A stretch of DNA of 63,807 nucleotides, filler included, from Calcarisporiella thermophila CBS 279.70 (lineage: Eukaryota; Fungi; Calcarisporiellomycota): the NCBI RefSeq assembly GCF_041956535.1. It is 5 parts of 4 records of this genome, joined end to end, with 100 filler letters (N's around TTAATTAATTAA, not from the genome) between each part and the next. Parts side by side here need not be neighbours in the genome. Positions count along the whole stretch, not along the records: positions 61,490 to 63,807 come from NW_027192200.1; 4 more parts are not named here. One strand, given 5' to 3'. Numbering within the stretch: position 1 is the stretch's first letter; each line of letters opens with the position of its first letter. A model generated the notes under the pieces. The model ran no database searches. It saw only the letters and a list, made by a program, of their open reading frames with translations, and was not told where the DNA came from. Shown one piece after another: positions 8,871-63,807 of this stretch. The translations under genes were made by a program, and so were the position numbers.

Positions 8871-10097
8871 TATACCTCTCTTAGCCATGACACTAATTTT
8901 CCCCAGCCGATTCGATGAAATAACATGATTTATTTCTATCTTTTAATTATTTTATCACTTTAGCATAGATAATATCTCTTGTTCATCACATCGTCTGATT
9001 ATTTTCTTTGGCTATTTAACTCCTTGTATTGTCGATGGTTCCTCACCAATTTGTTATATTTCTTAAGTCTACATAAAATGACCGCTACAAATTAGCTTGA
9101 GGCTGACTCAACCTTAGTATCCCCAATCTAGCGTTGGGCAGAATTGCGTATTTGAACCAACTCAATGCAGCCCAAGAGTACAGCAGATCTTCTAGACATC
9201 GTTCCATTTTTCATGCAAATCATCACGAAGCTTCCCTCTGAGTTCGTTAGCAGATTAAGTCTGCAGTGGCCGTGACAGTTTCCCTTCACCCCAATCGAGG
9301 TGGGCAAGCTCCGATTCACAAATTTGTTTTTTTTTTCTTGGTGACGATTGGCTAATCAGTTTTTTTGCTAAAAACTCCAATTAATTTACCTCTAATTTAA
9401 TTTAGATATGAGCAGTTAAGATTATGCATTACGCTCTAAGGCACAAAACATATTGGTTGAGACAGATTCAGCGAACGCGCGAGAAATAGGCAGCATATCA
9501 AGTGGTTCTATCATGTAAATCGATACAAGCTCTGAAAAAAGAATAACTGAACGAAACGATTCCGAGAAAGCTGTGTGCAATGACGAAGAAAGCGTAGAGA
9601 GGATCGCAAGTGGCCGCAGGTAAGTTTCGAGGTCCTGGAAGAGACGGAATACTAGACGAAATAGAGGATAAATATCATCCGGTAATCTGTAGCACCAAGC
9701 ATGGGAATGTGCACTATGAAAACCGTTATTGCGATGCAATGTCGCCAGCGAAACTCTTTCTCTCCTCTCTCTCTGCTCTAAGGCATAATACTCGTGTCGA
9801 AAACCCAATCGAAATGCCCAAACGTGAAGAGGTTGGTTGAGCTGGTTTGCGCTTCAGTGATGCGTCAACCTTAATCAAGACAGGTAGAACCGTGCATGCC
9901 AAAAGAGTGATTGCCAAACTATTGCATAGCAGTGCTGATATTTGCTTTTGCACCATTTGGTGTAATAAAACGTCAAGAAAACTACAAATAAATTTCATCA
10001 GATCGATCGACTCTTGCAAATTTTTTTTTAAGTTTGGCTGTAACAACCCCTTCGACACAAAACTAACTGCAACCATAGTAGGAATCGCAATTAATAA

Positions 10098-11542: not shown

Positions 11543-12232
11543 CCCCACAAAAAACTCTCCTGGTGAAAACTACTAGAAAACGTATAGGAGCATGTAGAAA
11601 AAGGTGGANNNNNNNNNNNNNNNNNNNNNNNNNNNNNNNNNNNNNNNNNNNNNNNNNNNNNNNNNNNNNNNNNNNNNNNNNNNNNNNNNNNNNNNNNNNN
11701 NNNNNNNNNNNNNNNNNNNNNNNNNNNNNNNNNNNNNNNNNNNNNNNNNNNNNNNNNNNNNNNNNNNNNNNNNNNNNNNNNNNNNNNNNNNNNNNNNNNN
11801 NNNNNNNNNNNNNNNNNNNNNNNNNNNNNNNNNNNNNNNNNNNNNNNNNNNNNNNNNNNNNNNNNNNNNNNNNNNNNNNNNNNNNNNNNNNNNNNNNNNN
11901 NNNNNNNNNNNNNNNNNNNNNNNNNNNNNNNNNNNNNNNNNNNNNNNNNNNNNNNNNNNNNNNNNNNNNNNNNNNNNNNNNNNNNNNNNNNNNNNNNNNN
12001 NNNNNNNNNNNNNNNNNNNNNNNNNNNNNNNNNNNNNNNNNNNNNNNNNNNNNNNTCCCTAAATTTTTACAAACTTTTCACCTATTTTTCAAGATATTAA
12101 TAATGGGAGAAGAGTCTACAAATTATAGTGAAATTGTTGAAAAATTATAGGGAATCGCGAACCTCCTCCACCTTTTCTACATGCTCCTATTCGTTTTCTA
12201 GCAGTTTTCACCAGACGGGTTTTTTGTAGGGG
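11543..12232. mobile_element. MITE / non-autonomous TA-targeting DNA transposon spanning an N-gap
   Basis: Imperfect terminal inverted repeats of about 65 bp (CCCCACAAAAAAC..GGTGAAAAC..TAGGAGCATGTAGAAAA / reverse complement at 12167-12232), flanked by TA on both sides. Confidence 0.8.
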
Positions 12233-13084
12233 TATGTAATGGGTTTACTACATCTCTGATGATAAAATTTAAATTTGACGACATGGGTGTCCTGGAGGTA
12301 GGTGAGAATCTGGCCATTTAACTGGAGGGTTAACCTGGAGCAATACTCGGTATATATTATTGTATTTCTCATAGAAGGATATTGCTGAGCTGGAGGGATT
12401 TATAATTTAATGTTTTCGAGTCATTACCATGACAAAGCAACAGACTGAGATTGAGTCTTGCCAAGCCCAGTGGACAAGCATGTACAAAAGTGTTGATCCC
12501 CTTCTGTATAAATACAGTGGAAAATACTGAGCAAGAGGATTAATAGCCCTAAAATCGACCTACAGTAATTTAAAATAAGCCTAATCTCTACTCTATTATA
12601 AGAAAAATTAGAAGAACGAGAAAATTTTGGAGCACCTGCATTTATTATTTTTATTGAGAAATCTTTGATTGAACATACTGTAAAATATAAAATAAAATTA
12701 CTATATAGGGAAGCAAAACATTAGACTAAATTTCATATACACTGATCTGAAGGACGATACTGATTTAACTTAGTTAAAATTAACCTGATCAATCCTTGTT
12801 ATAAACTGTTGTATTTGGAAATCTATGCCCACCTACAATATATTTTTCCCCATGAATCTTTTTCAGCCAATTTTGATGTGGCTTCCTAGGATACCAATTG
12901 ATTTTAAAGACCCTCCTTATCACTTCACTACTCTATATTTATACCGATTTTATCTTCTTTTTTCTACAACTTTTATTTATCTTGCTAAGTGAACATTGGC
13001 TCGTGTATACTTGACTGAATGAGAATGCTCAGCCAAACTAGCATGGACTGTTCCTCTTTTCTCATTGCACTAACATTAATTTGC

Positions 13085-13384
13085 TTAATCATCGCAGTAC
13101 CACTCGTGGTCTTGACAACGCCCGAAGCCAGAATTTTTGCCTCCATAACAAGACACTTCGGTGCGACCCTCGGCACGACACGAGTATCCGTGAGCATTGA
13201 GTGCGCCTAAGAAGTCATTCCGCTGCTTGTGTGCACTGAGGCCACAGACTCCTCGGCAAGTATAAAAACACTCGCTTTCTTTGCCGTCCCATTCCTTGAA
13301 ACGACAGGCCCATTTCTTCGCATCTACTGCAGTGTTTACGCAGCACATCAACAAGGAAGCCAGGATGATGGTGGTGATTCTCAT
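13085..13384 (-). CDS. Small secreted cysteine-rich protein (8 Cys in mature part)
   Basis: Signal peptide MRITTIILASLLMCCVNTAVDA, TATAAA about 120 bp upstream, even Cys count. Confidence 0.8.
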   Translation of the reverse strand: MRITTIILASLLMCCVNTAVDAKKWACRFKEWDGKESECFYTCRGVCGLSAHKQRNDFLGALNAHGYSCRAEGRTEVSCYGGKNSGFGRCQDHEWYCDD

Positions 13385-60243: not shown

Positions 60244-62128
60244 CCCTACAAAAAGCCCTCATTAGGATAATTGGCTAAAACTGTTTGGGAAGTTTTTGGA
60301 AAGTTTCCAAAATCTATATGTTTTGGCCCAAAACTGGTGTATGGAACATGGATTCTTGTCAGGTGGCCCAAAAAATAACCAAGACTCAGAGACTTAGCTT
60401 AGGCCTACTGACCAATTTCGGCCGTAACTCTAAACAGATCCCAAATAAAAAGTAATTTACGAGTCTCCAAAACTGATTTAATAATTACACAACTCACAAA
60501 ATTAGCTTAGGTTAGGGGGGTTCACGGTTCTTTTATTGACTTCTAATGTAAAGAAGAGTGATAATCTACAAGGTAAGTAAAGCGGAAAATCGTAAAGGGT
60601 GAAATAAAGATAGGAAATTTCAGAGTAGAAATTGATGTCCGTAAAAGGAAATCGGACAGATCAAGGGGAAATCGGGCAGGTTAAGATGAAATTGATGACG
60701 TCGCATTCGTGTAATTGTGGAGTGGTCGTCATTAGTAGGCTGGTGGGATTCCGCTATAGAGAGAGAAATAAAGTATAAATAGAGAGAAAAAAAAGGAAGG
60801 ATAAGAGTAGATATAACTCTAAATCGAATAAACCAAATATCTAAGGAGCTCAATAATAAGAATAGATGTAGATAAACTGAATATGTCAAATAGCTATATA
60901 TCTCCGTACGAGTGAAATTTCACTGTAGGGGGATAGATAAAATAGGAGAATGAAAGAGGGAGAAGGAAGAGGGAGGGGATGAAAATAAAATAAAATAAAA
61001 TAGTTGTAATATAAATCTAGCAACTCAAATGGCTAGGGAAATCAATAATTCAATAAATAGGAAATAGATGCTGTATAATGGCTATACAGCAGGTATCGGG
61101 AAGTGTAACGGTAAGAGTAATAGTAATAGTTCTCCAAAGAGGGCGGGAAGGGTAAAATTGAGTGGATAATAGCGATAAGTATATATACCGTTACTAGTAA
61201 TGGCAGAATGGGAAGCAGCTAGGGATGAGGGGGTGCGTAAGGTTTCTCGAGTTCTGGAGGGATCGGAGTTCCAAAGATTCCAAATCAAGTAAGTCAAGAA
61301 GAAAAAGATTGATTGATTTATTCTTTACAAAAAATCAAGGACTATTTATGAACTTCAGAAAACATTCTTTACATAATACAAGTTGGCGTNNNNNNNNNNN
61401 NNNNNNNNNNNNNNNNNNNNNNNNNNNNNNNNNTTAATTAATTAANNNNNNNNNNNNNNNNNNNNNNNNNNNNNNNNNNNNNNNNNNNNACTAAGCCGTC
61501 GCATACGCTAGGCTTAGTGCTAAAATATTTTTCTATTATTAAATTTCTTCCATTAAAATGAACACTTTCAATTTCACCGGTGCATCACAATATACAGTAT
61601 ATACAGTATATCATGCTCTATAAAATTGGATAATGAAATTTAAAATATGATTATTTACTGTGATTATCTCCAATATTCTTAACACTGGCATTTTATATCA
61701 GTTTTGTCTTTTATTTTTAAATATAGGGGGTTTTATCAAAAAATCGTTAAATTTCTCGAAATATATCATGCTGCTGTTGAAAGATAGTGAAATCTAATTT
61801 GTATTTTATTTCTTTGAGAGTCTGGAATATGAGGAAGCTTCAATTCTTTTCCAAATGTGATCCTGGAATCAGGGATAATTTTTTTTGTATTGAGATTGCA
61901 GTTGGATTGAAAACTCAGGAGAAGCATCAGTTAAAAAGATTTCAATTTTCAATATAAGTTAAGGAAACTGCATCTTTGTAGCGATGAAGAAATAAAGCCT
62001 CCAACCTAACCGCTATAACTAAGCCGCTATGGGAATTTATTGGGGTGAATATTTTCGCAATACTTATCAGCAACGGGGAACTCTAATAATCAAGTCTAAC
62101 ATAATTCATCTCATCCAAACTTATTGGA

Positions 62129-63807
62129 ATGTCCACGCAAACATCCAGTATTAGGGGAAATGTACATGCTGAGACGGGGGCAAATATTAGCATAGGGAAC
62201 AACATCAGCTATAATATTTCATTGGGTATATAGATAAATTAGAGAGAAGAGATCAACAATCTTCACGTTATTTATTTGGCTTAAACCAGAGGAATGGAGC
62301 TCCGCAAAAATGACGAGCCCGAACAAAGAAGTCAAATCTGCCTTTTATAACGTTCCACATGAAAATAAGGCCTTTGTTGAACGTCCCGATATTTTCAAAA
62401 AGATGGAAGATGCACTTTTCGCAGGCCCTAGCGGAGGCTGTAAAATCGCAGCACTCAGTGGGTTAGGTGGGATGGGAAAGACCCAACTCATGTTGCGTTT
62501 TAGCTACCTCCATCGTACAAAATATGATTTCGTGTTCTGGCTCAATGTCGACAGTTGGTCTATGGCGGCTGACTCGTTCCGTAGCCTTGCACTGTACCTT
62601 GGTATTCCAGAAAGGATTTTGGAGGAAAAATCTGAGGACAAATCTATCGAATGGGTTCGGAATTGGCTTGAAACCCGCTCAAAATGGCTACTTCTCTTGG
62701 ACAACTTGGACGACAGAATCGCCGATCAGATATTTCAAATATTACCTCGTGAAGGTGGACATATCATTTTGACTACACGCGGGCCGATCCCATCTAAGTG
62801 CGCAACGATCATTAATGTAGGGAATATGAAGGAAAATGAAGCGCTCTCGGCACTACTTGGTGAAGAGATGCATTCAATTGATAGAGAGGGTACTCGATTC
62901 CATAACGCGTACCAAATAGTTTTGCAGTTTGAATTTATGCCACTTGCAATAGAGCTTGCGCGCGCCTATATTGAAAATACTGCCTCCTCTTTCCAGAGCT
63001 ATCTTGATCAGTTGAAAAGGAATCAAGAAAGATTGCTTTCGTATAAGAGTGAAGACTCGCTAGGAGATTATGAGCACACAGTAGCAACAGTTTGGAATAT
63101 TTCTTTCGATCGTGTGCGAGAATTCTCGGCAACAGTGCCGATACTTGAAACTTGCACTTTTCTTCATCCGGATGAAATTCCAACACGTCTCTTTGAGCGT
63201 CAATTTGTTGCGCTCGATCTTTGCTCAATGGCACAATCATCGCTAGACAAACCACTAGGATGTGAAGATGTTCAAACAGCAATAGCGGTGCTAAATAAAT
63301 TCTCGCTTGTCACAATTACAGTTAATGAAGGCGACAGCAATAATGAGATAGCATGCAATACTTTAAGGATGCATCGACTCGTGCGTGAAGTGGTCTATGC
63401 CACAATTGAGGAGGATAGGAAGATAAATTGGGCACGGAAACTAACTGAAGCACTCAATATCGAGACAGAAAATTTAAACACTTACGATACCAAAGACAGA
63501 TCAGTTATGCAAATGTACCTTCCGCACATATGCCATTTTGTGGAATTGCTCGAGAATCTCAATGAGAAAGTTACGCTTTGCAAAGATCTTGTCAAGTTAC
63601 TAAATAATACAGTATTATATCTGCGTAAAAACGGAGTATACAATAGCACAGAAAAGCTAGCTGAGATTTCGGTAGTCATTAGTGGAAATATATATGGACC
63701 TGAGCACCCCGACATGGCCTCGTCAGTTAACAATCTGGCCATCCTCTATCGGAATCAGGGCAAGCACGAGCAGGCAGAACCGCTGTACCAGCGCGCCCTT
63801 GCCATCC
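62129..63807 (+). CDS. Fungal NLR: N-terminal amyloid-like motif + NB-ARC + TPR (runs off window)
   Basis: Exon 1 62129-62225, intron 62226-62289 (GT..CAG), in-frame exon 2. Motifs: P-loop GLGGMGKT, VFWL, Walker B WLLLLDNLD, ILTTR, MPLAI, MHRLV, TPR GPEHPDMASSVNNLAILYRNQGKHEQAEPLYQRAL. Confidence 0.92.

Follow-up and report, generated by a model that had tools for sequence, protein, structure and literature searches.

A short first exon very probably belongs to a NOD-like receptor (NLR) gene at the end of the window, and the disordered N-terminal tail that it encodes is, tentatively, a candidate for an amyloid signalling motif. The window is the whole stretch of DNA analysed, 63,807 nucleotides of the genome of the fungus Calcarisporiella thermophila CBS 279.70 assembled from five joined parts; the part in question, positions 61490-63807, is 100% identical to C. 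thermophila scaffold MU987573.1 of assembly GCA_041956535.1. The gene is the 5′ part of a C. thermophila NLR with an NB-ARC domain followed by tetratricopeptide repeats (TPRs), a known kind of NLR in an early-diverging fungus. The original prediction, made from the sequence alone, had rightly taken the host to be early-diverging (NCBI places it in the phylum Calcarisporiellomycota), and had proposed a 32-codon exon opened by the ATG at 62129 and joined in frame to the NB-ARC-TPR frame across a 64-nt GT-AG intron (62226-62289); coordinates and peptide proved exact. The exon is not hidden, as had been claimed, because the public model VTP21DRAFT_1062 already has this exon and splice: its protein, P0001, starts MSTQTSSIRGNVHAETGANISIGNNISYNISLEEWSSAKMTSPN..., with the same exon 1 and junction. 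The public annotation of this strain was made by SnowyOwl/MycoCosm (PMC11393059). P0001 is the top match in a protein search with the long frame, followed by P0002 (VTP21DRAFT_7781), which is 85% identical, also from C. thermophila, and referred to below as the paralog. The parts of the gene in the window are:

62129-62225, + strand: exon 1, with the ATG at 62129, 32 codons (MSTQTSSIRGNVHAETGANISIGNNISYNISL) and the first base of the junction codon; the N-terminus of P0001 is identical
62156-62200, + strand: residues G10-N24 (GNVHAETGANISIGN), the central part of the candidate beta-arch/amyloid-like motif, from paralog conservation and a pattern of the HET-s-related amyloid motif (HRAM) type
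62226-62289, + strand: phase-1 intron, 64 nt, GTATAT...CAG, from the paralog intron comparison
62290-63807, + strand: exon 2, with the linker, NB-ARC, winged-helix/DUF7779 and first TPRs, from the open frame and Pfam; the frame is cut by a scaffold gap at 63807
62310-62312, + strand: internal in-frame ATG (AAAATGA), a possible alternative start; the paralog has TTT (Phe)
62406-63032, + strand: NB-ARC domain (Pfam PF00931, E 9.1e-11), with the P-loop GLGGMGKT at 62460-62483
63135-63419, + strand: DUF7779 region (Pfam PF25000, E 2.5e-07), the winged-helix part of the nucleotide-binding oligomerization (NOD) module
63600-63806, + strand: first TPR units (TPR_12/TPR_10; Pfam PF13424, PF13374); the array goes on past the window

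Comparative evidence makes it very probable that exon 1 is real. Exon 1 ends at 62225 with the first base of codon 33, the splice runs from the GT at 62226 to the AG at 62288-62289, and the junction codon G|AG (Glu) leads into an exon 2 that stays in frame through NB-ARC and TPRs to the end of the window. If the intron stays in, the exon-1 frame runs into a stop at 62231-62233, and it is only at 62238 that the NB-ARC frame opens. Exon 1 is more than a chance frame because the public model agrees, the identity profile between the paralog loci follows it, and the paralog needs its ATG. DNA identity between these loci is 34% at -350..-101 and 50% at -100..-1 upstream of the gene, then 78% in exon 1, 64% in the intron and 77-89% in exon 2, and the onset of conservation coincides with the exon-1 ATG; the sole exon-1 indel is of 3 nt, which is codon-sized. 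The paralog intron is 63 nt long (GTATGT...TAG) and has a CTAAT branch site at the equivalent place. Where the gene has Met-62310 the paralog has Phe (TTT), with no other in-frame ATG there before NB-ARC, and therefore a protein with the conserved FYxVP...FVERP box can begin only at the exon-1 ATG. The same dependence on the first exon applies to a Jimgerdemannia homolog, which likewise has no alternative in-frame ATG. A third C. thermophila locus (L004, on MU987581.1, with protein P0048, 5′ of VTP21DRAFT_3556) has an unannotated exon-1 homolog at 9724-9822, MSQSSTIFGKVQADGGGFANAGVFNVNCRNFSM, and thereby gains a first exon. This homolog ends ATG G|GTATGA (donor), and the equivalent acceptor leaves the exon one base out of the NB-ARC frame; because of this frame shift and a truncated model (the annotated VTP21DRAFT_3556 protein has only 345 residues), the copy is probably decaying.

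Exon 1 and exon 2 were searched separately, and the structure model was built from the identical public protein P0001. Pfam recognizes NB-ARC, DUF7779 and TPR_10/TPR_12 (TPRs from residue 431 of the open reading frame, ORF) and no domain in the first 32 residues. The AlphaFold2 model, based on 49 homologs, has a mean predicted local distance difference test (pLDDT) score of 83.9; residues 1-44 score 29-35 and those afterwards 88-97, with the fold beginning near residue 50. The best Foldseek matches of the model are resting NRC2 (8rfh) and ADP-bound Apaf-1 (3sfz/1z6t), with E about 1e-13 and TM about 0.6. The protein has both features that mark an NLR/STAND (signal transduction ATPases with numerous domains) NTPase of the NB-ARC-TPR type, an NB-ARC domain with a P-loop and C-terminal superstructure-forming repeats (TPR). 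It is an NLR in which a short disordered N/G/S/I-rich tail of ~44 residues, rather than a folded effector domain, precedes an Apaf-1/NRC-like NOD module. The expectation that the protein would have no N-terminal effector domain is upheld by Pfam (none found) and by the AlphaFold2 scores below 50 for residues 1-44. A protein-atlas comparison of residues 1-44 returned no usable feature match, and the structural matches that it gave were short and meaningless. The nearest non-fungal relatives of the NOD-TPR body are bacterial, at ~30% identity.

Position, composition and a loosely significant pattern are the grounds for reading the tail as an amyloid signalling motif. The candidate motif spans residues 7-24, with a core at 10-24, and lies at the extreme N-terminus of an NLR outside any folded domain, as expected for amyloid motifs of 20-40 residues; most HRAM and PP motifs sit at positions 5-9 (PMC9815663). 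The 32 exon-1 residues include N 5, G 3, I 5 and S 6, with P 0 and K 0, and enrichment in N, G and I without P or K is the compositional bias reported for fungal and bacterial amyloid signalling motifs (bioRxiv 10.1101/2020.01.06.895854), which are in general N/G/Q/V/I-rich and P/K/L-poor. Conservation of the peptide in the paralog, on which the prediction was staked, was confirmed: the paralog keeps the exon, the intron position and the core GNVHAExGAxIx[IV]GN, and in G10-N24 it is identical at 11/15 residues (GNVHAEAGAHINVGN) with the remainder conservative, whereas the flanks vary. A concrete 15-residue core is now defined.

HRAMs are defined by hydrophobic residues at positions 3, 6, 8, 14 and 16 and by an invariant arch Gly at 17 (19 in the alternative numbering) with a large polar residue directly after it (PMC4518210, PMC5485727). 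The arch Gly and polar residue are present as G23-N24 in both the gene and the paralog, and four of the five hydrophobic positions are occupied by V12, A14, I20 and I22 (positions 6, 8, 14 and 16). The third-locus exon MSQSSTIFGKVQADGGGFANAGVFNVNCRNFSM has 5/5 hydrophobic positions and the arch Gly, with Val and not a polar residue after it. When residue n is set against residue n-4 of Podospora NWD2, V12-H13-A14, I20 and G23 fall on NWD2 I8-H9-A10, V16 and G19; the NWD2 changes H9P and G19A abolish prion infectivity (PMC4344463). The best phmmer matches in the PDB are left-handed beta-helix acyltransferases and a gamma-carbonic anhydrase (E 0.3-1.1, not significant), look-alikes that hint at a beta-solenoid-like sequence.

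At 62183-62221 the tail contains three N-I-S tripeptides (N19, N25 and N29), 4-6 residues apart, a mini-repeat like the hexapeptide repeats of beta-helices. Formally the tripeptides also qualify as N-glycosylation sequons, though this probably has no relevance for a cytosolic NLR.

Several results weigh against the amyloid reading. HRAM position 3 is taken by R9 (S9 in the paralog) instead of a hydrophobic residue, and the first arch Gly is offset from the HRAM register by one residue. Composition-matched shuffles reach 4/5 hydrophobic positions plus Gly and polar residue in 4.9% of trials for the gene and 8.2% for the paralog. No HET-s chain was matched by phmmer in the PDB, and Pfam at E <= 10 gave the tail no match to HET-s, sigma or any other amyloid family; the lack of a HET-s profile match is a weak test because PF11558 matches only 38/155 HRAM proteins (PMC4518210). 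The G-hydrophobic-Q-hydrophobic-G core of PP, RHIM and BASS3 motifs (PMC5485727, PMC9815663) is absent: the tail has I-S-I-G and no Gln in its core. The sigma motif (~40 residues, with Pfam Ses_B/NACHT_sigma signatures) likewise gave no match at E <= 10. Comparison with the HRAM (HET-s profile), PP, RHIM, BASS3 and sigma signatures, which the prediction had called for, gave no family profile match. Between the paralogs, exon 1 carries 10 non-synonymous and 4 synonymous differences. The tail does resemble HET-s/NWD2-type motifs, as originally claimed, in position, length, composition and pattern; no amyloid family profile matches it, and a fit of this quality arises in 5-8% of shuffles.

What defines amyloid signalling is a second copy of the motif at the C-terminus of an effector, typically the product of an adjacent or closely linked gene, and the searches for such a partner count on the same side. 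Six-frame blastp-short and hidden Markov model (HMM) scans of ~140 kb of loci (±10 kb of the gene, 10 kb upstream of the paralog and nine further loci around related NLR genes) found no second motif copy. The test of adjacency is limited because a gap sits 640 bp upstream of the gene; the prediction had noted a scaffold join at about that distance, which holds, and the break itself is a 1,056-nt run of N. A word-based search of 5.8 billion proteins with residues 1-40, at lengths of 151-481 and 340-1080 aa, returned no partner. An HMM of three exon-1 peptides, run against 1.84 billion representatives, found only the paralog and six long repetitive proteins; it lists matches at E <= 0.001 only (~41 bits), so that its power is low and a diverged partner would be missed. 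The six other matches were ruled out as effectors: they are repetitive surface or Cys-rich proteins whose score accumulated over 4-15 repeats. Back-translated patterns gave no confirmed relative in JGI metagenomes, and the full core pattern has zero exact matches in those metagenomes or in 185,579 prokaryotic genomes. No cognate HeLo or HeLo-like protein with two motif pseudo-repeats was found in the protein-database and ~140-kb locus searches. The gene had been called the receptor half of an amyloid cell-death system; with the cognate motif not found by locus, protein or DNA-pattern searches, that role is unproven. Eleven of 16 fungal NLR amyloid-like motif classes are without a neighbouring partner, and neighbouring partners were likewise not found in Agaricomycetes (PMC9815663).

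Three ORFs considered as effectors were rejected: L001 7379-8286 (L001 being the locus on MU987573.1 that holds the NLR gene, with window coordinate = L001 coordinate + 52128) encodes 255 aa without a Pfam domain and ends ahead of the gap without the motif, L004 6620-7502 encodes a multi-pass membrane protein, and L003 7451-8538 a 7TM-like protein. One Cys-rich protein of the representative library (P0123, 940 aa) has ~15 tandem repeats with SGRNWHAEAGTMQSVGSD, resembling the paralog's GNVHAEAGAHINVGN, probably by chance or convergence.

Related NLRs share the architecture of the first exon. Five related fungal contigs, one from Jimgerdemannia (L005) and four metagenomic/Logan contigs (L006, L008, L010 and L011), encode NLRs that are 36-53% identical; each has a first exon of 26-38 codons, N/S/G-rich in every case, and a phase-1 intron 11-21 codons before an F[YH]xVP box. 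A short ORF and phase-1 intron are thus kept at three C. thermophila loci and five related contigs. MAFFT aligns an [AV]-[EDS]-x-G core across these first exons. At the sequence level a family-wide first-exon motif was rejected: with one group left out at a time, the HMM recovered L011 alone (E 1e-4, a score due to L008-like sequences), such profiles miss the Calcarisporiella exons, and the Calcarisporiella profile scores L011 at 2 bits. First-exon similarity outside C. thermophila is not significant in profile comparison with the related contigs, a further point against the amyloid reading, and because leave-one-group-out profiles fail, it is the architecture and not a demonstrable motif sequence that is shared. 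The suggestion that the motif is packaged as a swappable exon is no more than compatible with the phase-1 intron behind unrelated first exons in related NLRs: the pattern would suit a signalling exon that is swappable or diversifies rapidly, and it would suit an unconstrained leader just as well.

Two observations on related genes stand apart from this comparison. VTP21DRAFT_1081 (L003 9400-10100), a 50%-identical paralog ~64 kb away on the same scaffold, has a public start at an internal Met in the NB-ARC N-terminal box; its frame is open upstream (..SNISKFYGVPAANYAFVDRP..), and no motif-bearing first exon was found within 1.4 kb. On the metagenomic fungal contig L006 (8486-17635), the related NLR lies directly 5′ of a hybrid polyketide synthase/non-ribosomal peptide synthetase (PKS/NRPS)-type gene of ~3,000 residues.

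An amyloid-signalling role for the tail is the best single mechanistic hypothesis, held tentatively on the sequence features set out above. Under this hypothesis, a ligand at the TPR array would trigger NB-ARC oligomerization, which would bring the N-terminal tails together; the strand-arc-strand core GNVHAETGANISIGN could then stack into a beta-arch, amyloid-like assembly, and this assembly would either template the same fold in an unlinked effector, as the NWD2 r0 motif does for HET-S, or simply stabilize the oligomer. A stronger form is somewhat unlikely: it would make the tail a true amyloid signalling motif from a new sequence family and the first NLR-associated amyloid signalling system outside Dikarya, in Calcarisporiellomycota. 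The motif would have a first exon to itself, next to a phase-1 intron that is conserved, and the effector would be unlinked or lie in assembly gaps.

The exon may instead be real and translated, and the tail a fast-evolving disordered leader without specific signalling, in which case the NLR would act through its NOD-TPR body or other partners. We regard this as somewhat unlikely. The excess of non-synonymous differences (10 against 4) between the paralogs fits such a leader, as do the first exons of related NLRs, which are not significantly alike, the searches, which gave no partner or family match, the HRAM pattern in 5-8% of shuffles and the tail pLDDT below 50; but a free leader would not obviously explain why core G10-N24 is 11/15 identical with only conservative changes while its flanks vary, why ORF, length and phase-1 intron persist across three C. 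thermophila loci and five related contigs, or why the composition so strikingly resembles that of amyloid signalling motifs.

Less probable is a functional short motif that acts without an amyloid template, as an auto-inhibitory or docking peptide or through a non-amyloid homotypic contact that stabilizes the NLR oligomer. A conserved core on a disordered tail would suit this, as would the HMM and locus scans, which gave no partner motif, and some amyloid-like motif instances have been proposed as scaffolds that stabilize NLR oligomers (PMC9815663). Nothing positive, however, points to any specific alternative of this kind, and the N/G/I-rich alternation and Gly-Asn arch typify beta-arch stacking, not known linear docking motifs.

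A start at ATG 62310, which would make the upstream ORF a short upstream ORF (if the intron is retained) or a relic and leave exon 1 outside this gene's protein, is improbable: the ATG lies 20 nt into exon 2 in good context (A at -3) and would still include the whole NB-ARC domain, and the intron (GTATAT) has no canonical CTRAY branch site, only TTCAC 24 nt from the 3′ splice site, all of which count against exon 1, but the paralog, lacking an ATG at this place, depends on exon 1, the exon-1 ORF has stayed intact, its indel being a multiple of three, homology between the paralog loci starts at the exon-1 ATG, and the public model includes the exon. The prediction had itself named a start near 62310 as the alternative to be feared, and the Phe in the paralog speaks against it. 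With its weaker intron and a good ATG further downstream, this gene might nevertheless use a second start as well.

With the tail read as an amyloid-signalling candidate, its closest counterpart is the NWD2/HET-S system of Podospora anserina (PMC4344463, PMC4518210), in which the only N-terminal element of the NLR is likewise a motif of ~21 residues before the NOD. Shared with NWD2 are hydrophobic residues at motif positions 6, 8, 14 and 16, an arch Gly followed by Asn, and His-Ala at NWD2 H9-A10; shared with r0 motifs generally are few charged residues and many Ser and His. Unlike NWD2, which is a NACHT-WD protein, the gene here is NB-ARC-TPR, the host lies outside Dikarya and the motif is on its own exon. 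Further differences from NWD2/HET-S are a non-hydrophobic position 3 and a first arch Gly shifted by one; PF11558 does not match, and neither an adjacent HeLo gene nor a cognate motif turned up in the searches made. The orphan NLR motifs of Agaricomycetes (NLR05/08/22/29/44; PMC9815663) are similar in their short N-termini, HRAM-like hydrophobic pattern with a C-terminal G[DN], and no motif-bearing neighbour; the effectors of these classes are presumed unlinked (PMC9815663). Those classes number dozens of NLRs per strain and were identified with calibrated grammars and ArchCandy, whereas the exon here occurs at only three genome loci, one of them decayed. Bacterial BASS proteins (bioRxiv 10.1101/2020.01.06.895854) resemble the gene in pairing an NB-ARC-TPR receptor with an N-terminal motif of ~25 residues rich in N, G, V and I. 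In contrast to BASS/Bell-domain pairs, which are collinear and usually within 10 bp, this gene has no Bell-like neighbour; none of the prokaryotic genomes searched contains an exact match to the core pattern, and the gene has a spliceosomal intron.

For Ascomycota, amyloid templating from NLR to effector is an established mechanism; for Agaricomycetes it has been inferred, and it is also known from multicellular bacteria and animals (RHIM). The literature searched yielded no report of it for early-diverging fungi. If validated in Calcarisporiella, the mechanism would be pushed deeper into the fungal tree, and the case would be relevant to the question of whether fungi inherited amyloid signalling or acquired it with bacterial-type NB-ARC-TPR genes.

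The 5′ end of the existing gene model is upheld; its 3′ end proves to be wrong. The NLR-bearing contig is flanked by scaffold gaps at L001 8306-9361 (upstream) and 11680-13293 (downstream), and further TPRs and a stop codon lie beyond the latter, at about L001 13294-13628. The public 617-residue VTP21DRAFT_1062 treats the downstream 1,614-nt N run as an intron (...EQAEPL|QGKYEQAEQLYQRALAIREK...). Because the model jumps this gap, the real protein is probably much longer: many additional TPR units probably belong to the true NLR gene, and the 3′ half of VTP21DRAFT_1062 is an assembly artefact.

Within 61490-63807, GC content is 25-36% upstream (AT-rich) and rises to 40-48% from about 62240, and an Rfam scan gave zero matches. 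Neighbouring genes at the NLR loci encode a cation ATPase, DJ-1, a 255-residue Pfam-less ORF, TAP42 and SUI1 and are unrelated. One further feature lies upstream of the gene, as context outside the coding model:

61523-61937, no strand assigned: upstream direct-repeat copy, from a repeat search on L001 6800-10100

This copy (L001 9395-9809) and a second at L001 7027-7458 form a direct repeat of about 415-430 bp that is 86-93% identical. The copies are ~2.36 kb apart and flank a GC-richer Pfam-less ORF (L001 7507-8064) together with the 1,056-nt scaffold gap, and the downstream copy stops 192 bp before the NLR ATG. The repeat could be an LTR-like (long terminal repeat) pair or a duplicated promoter segment.

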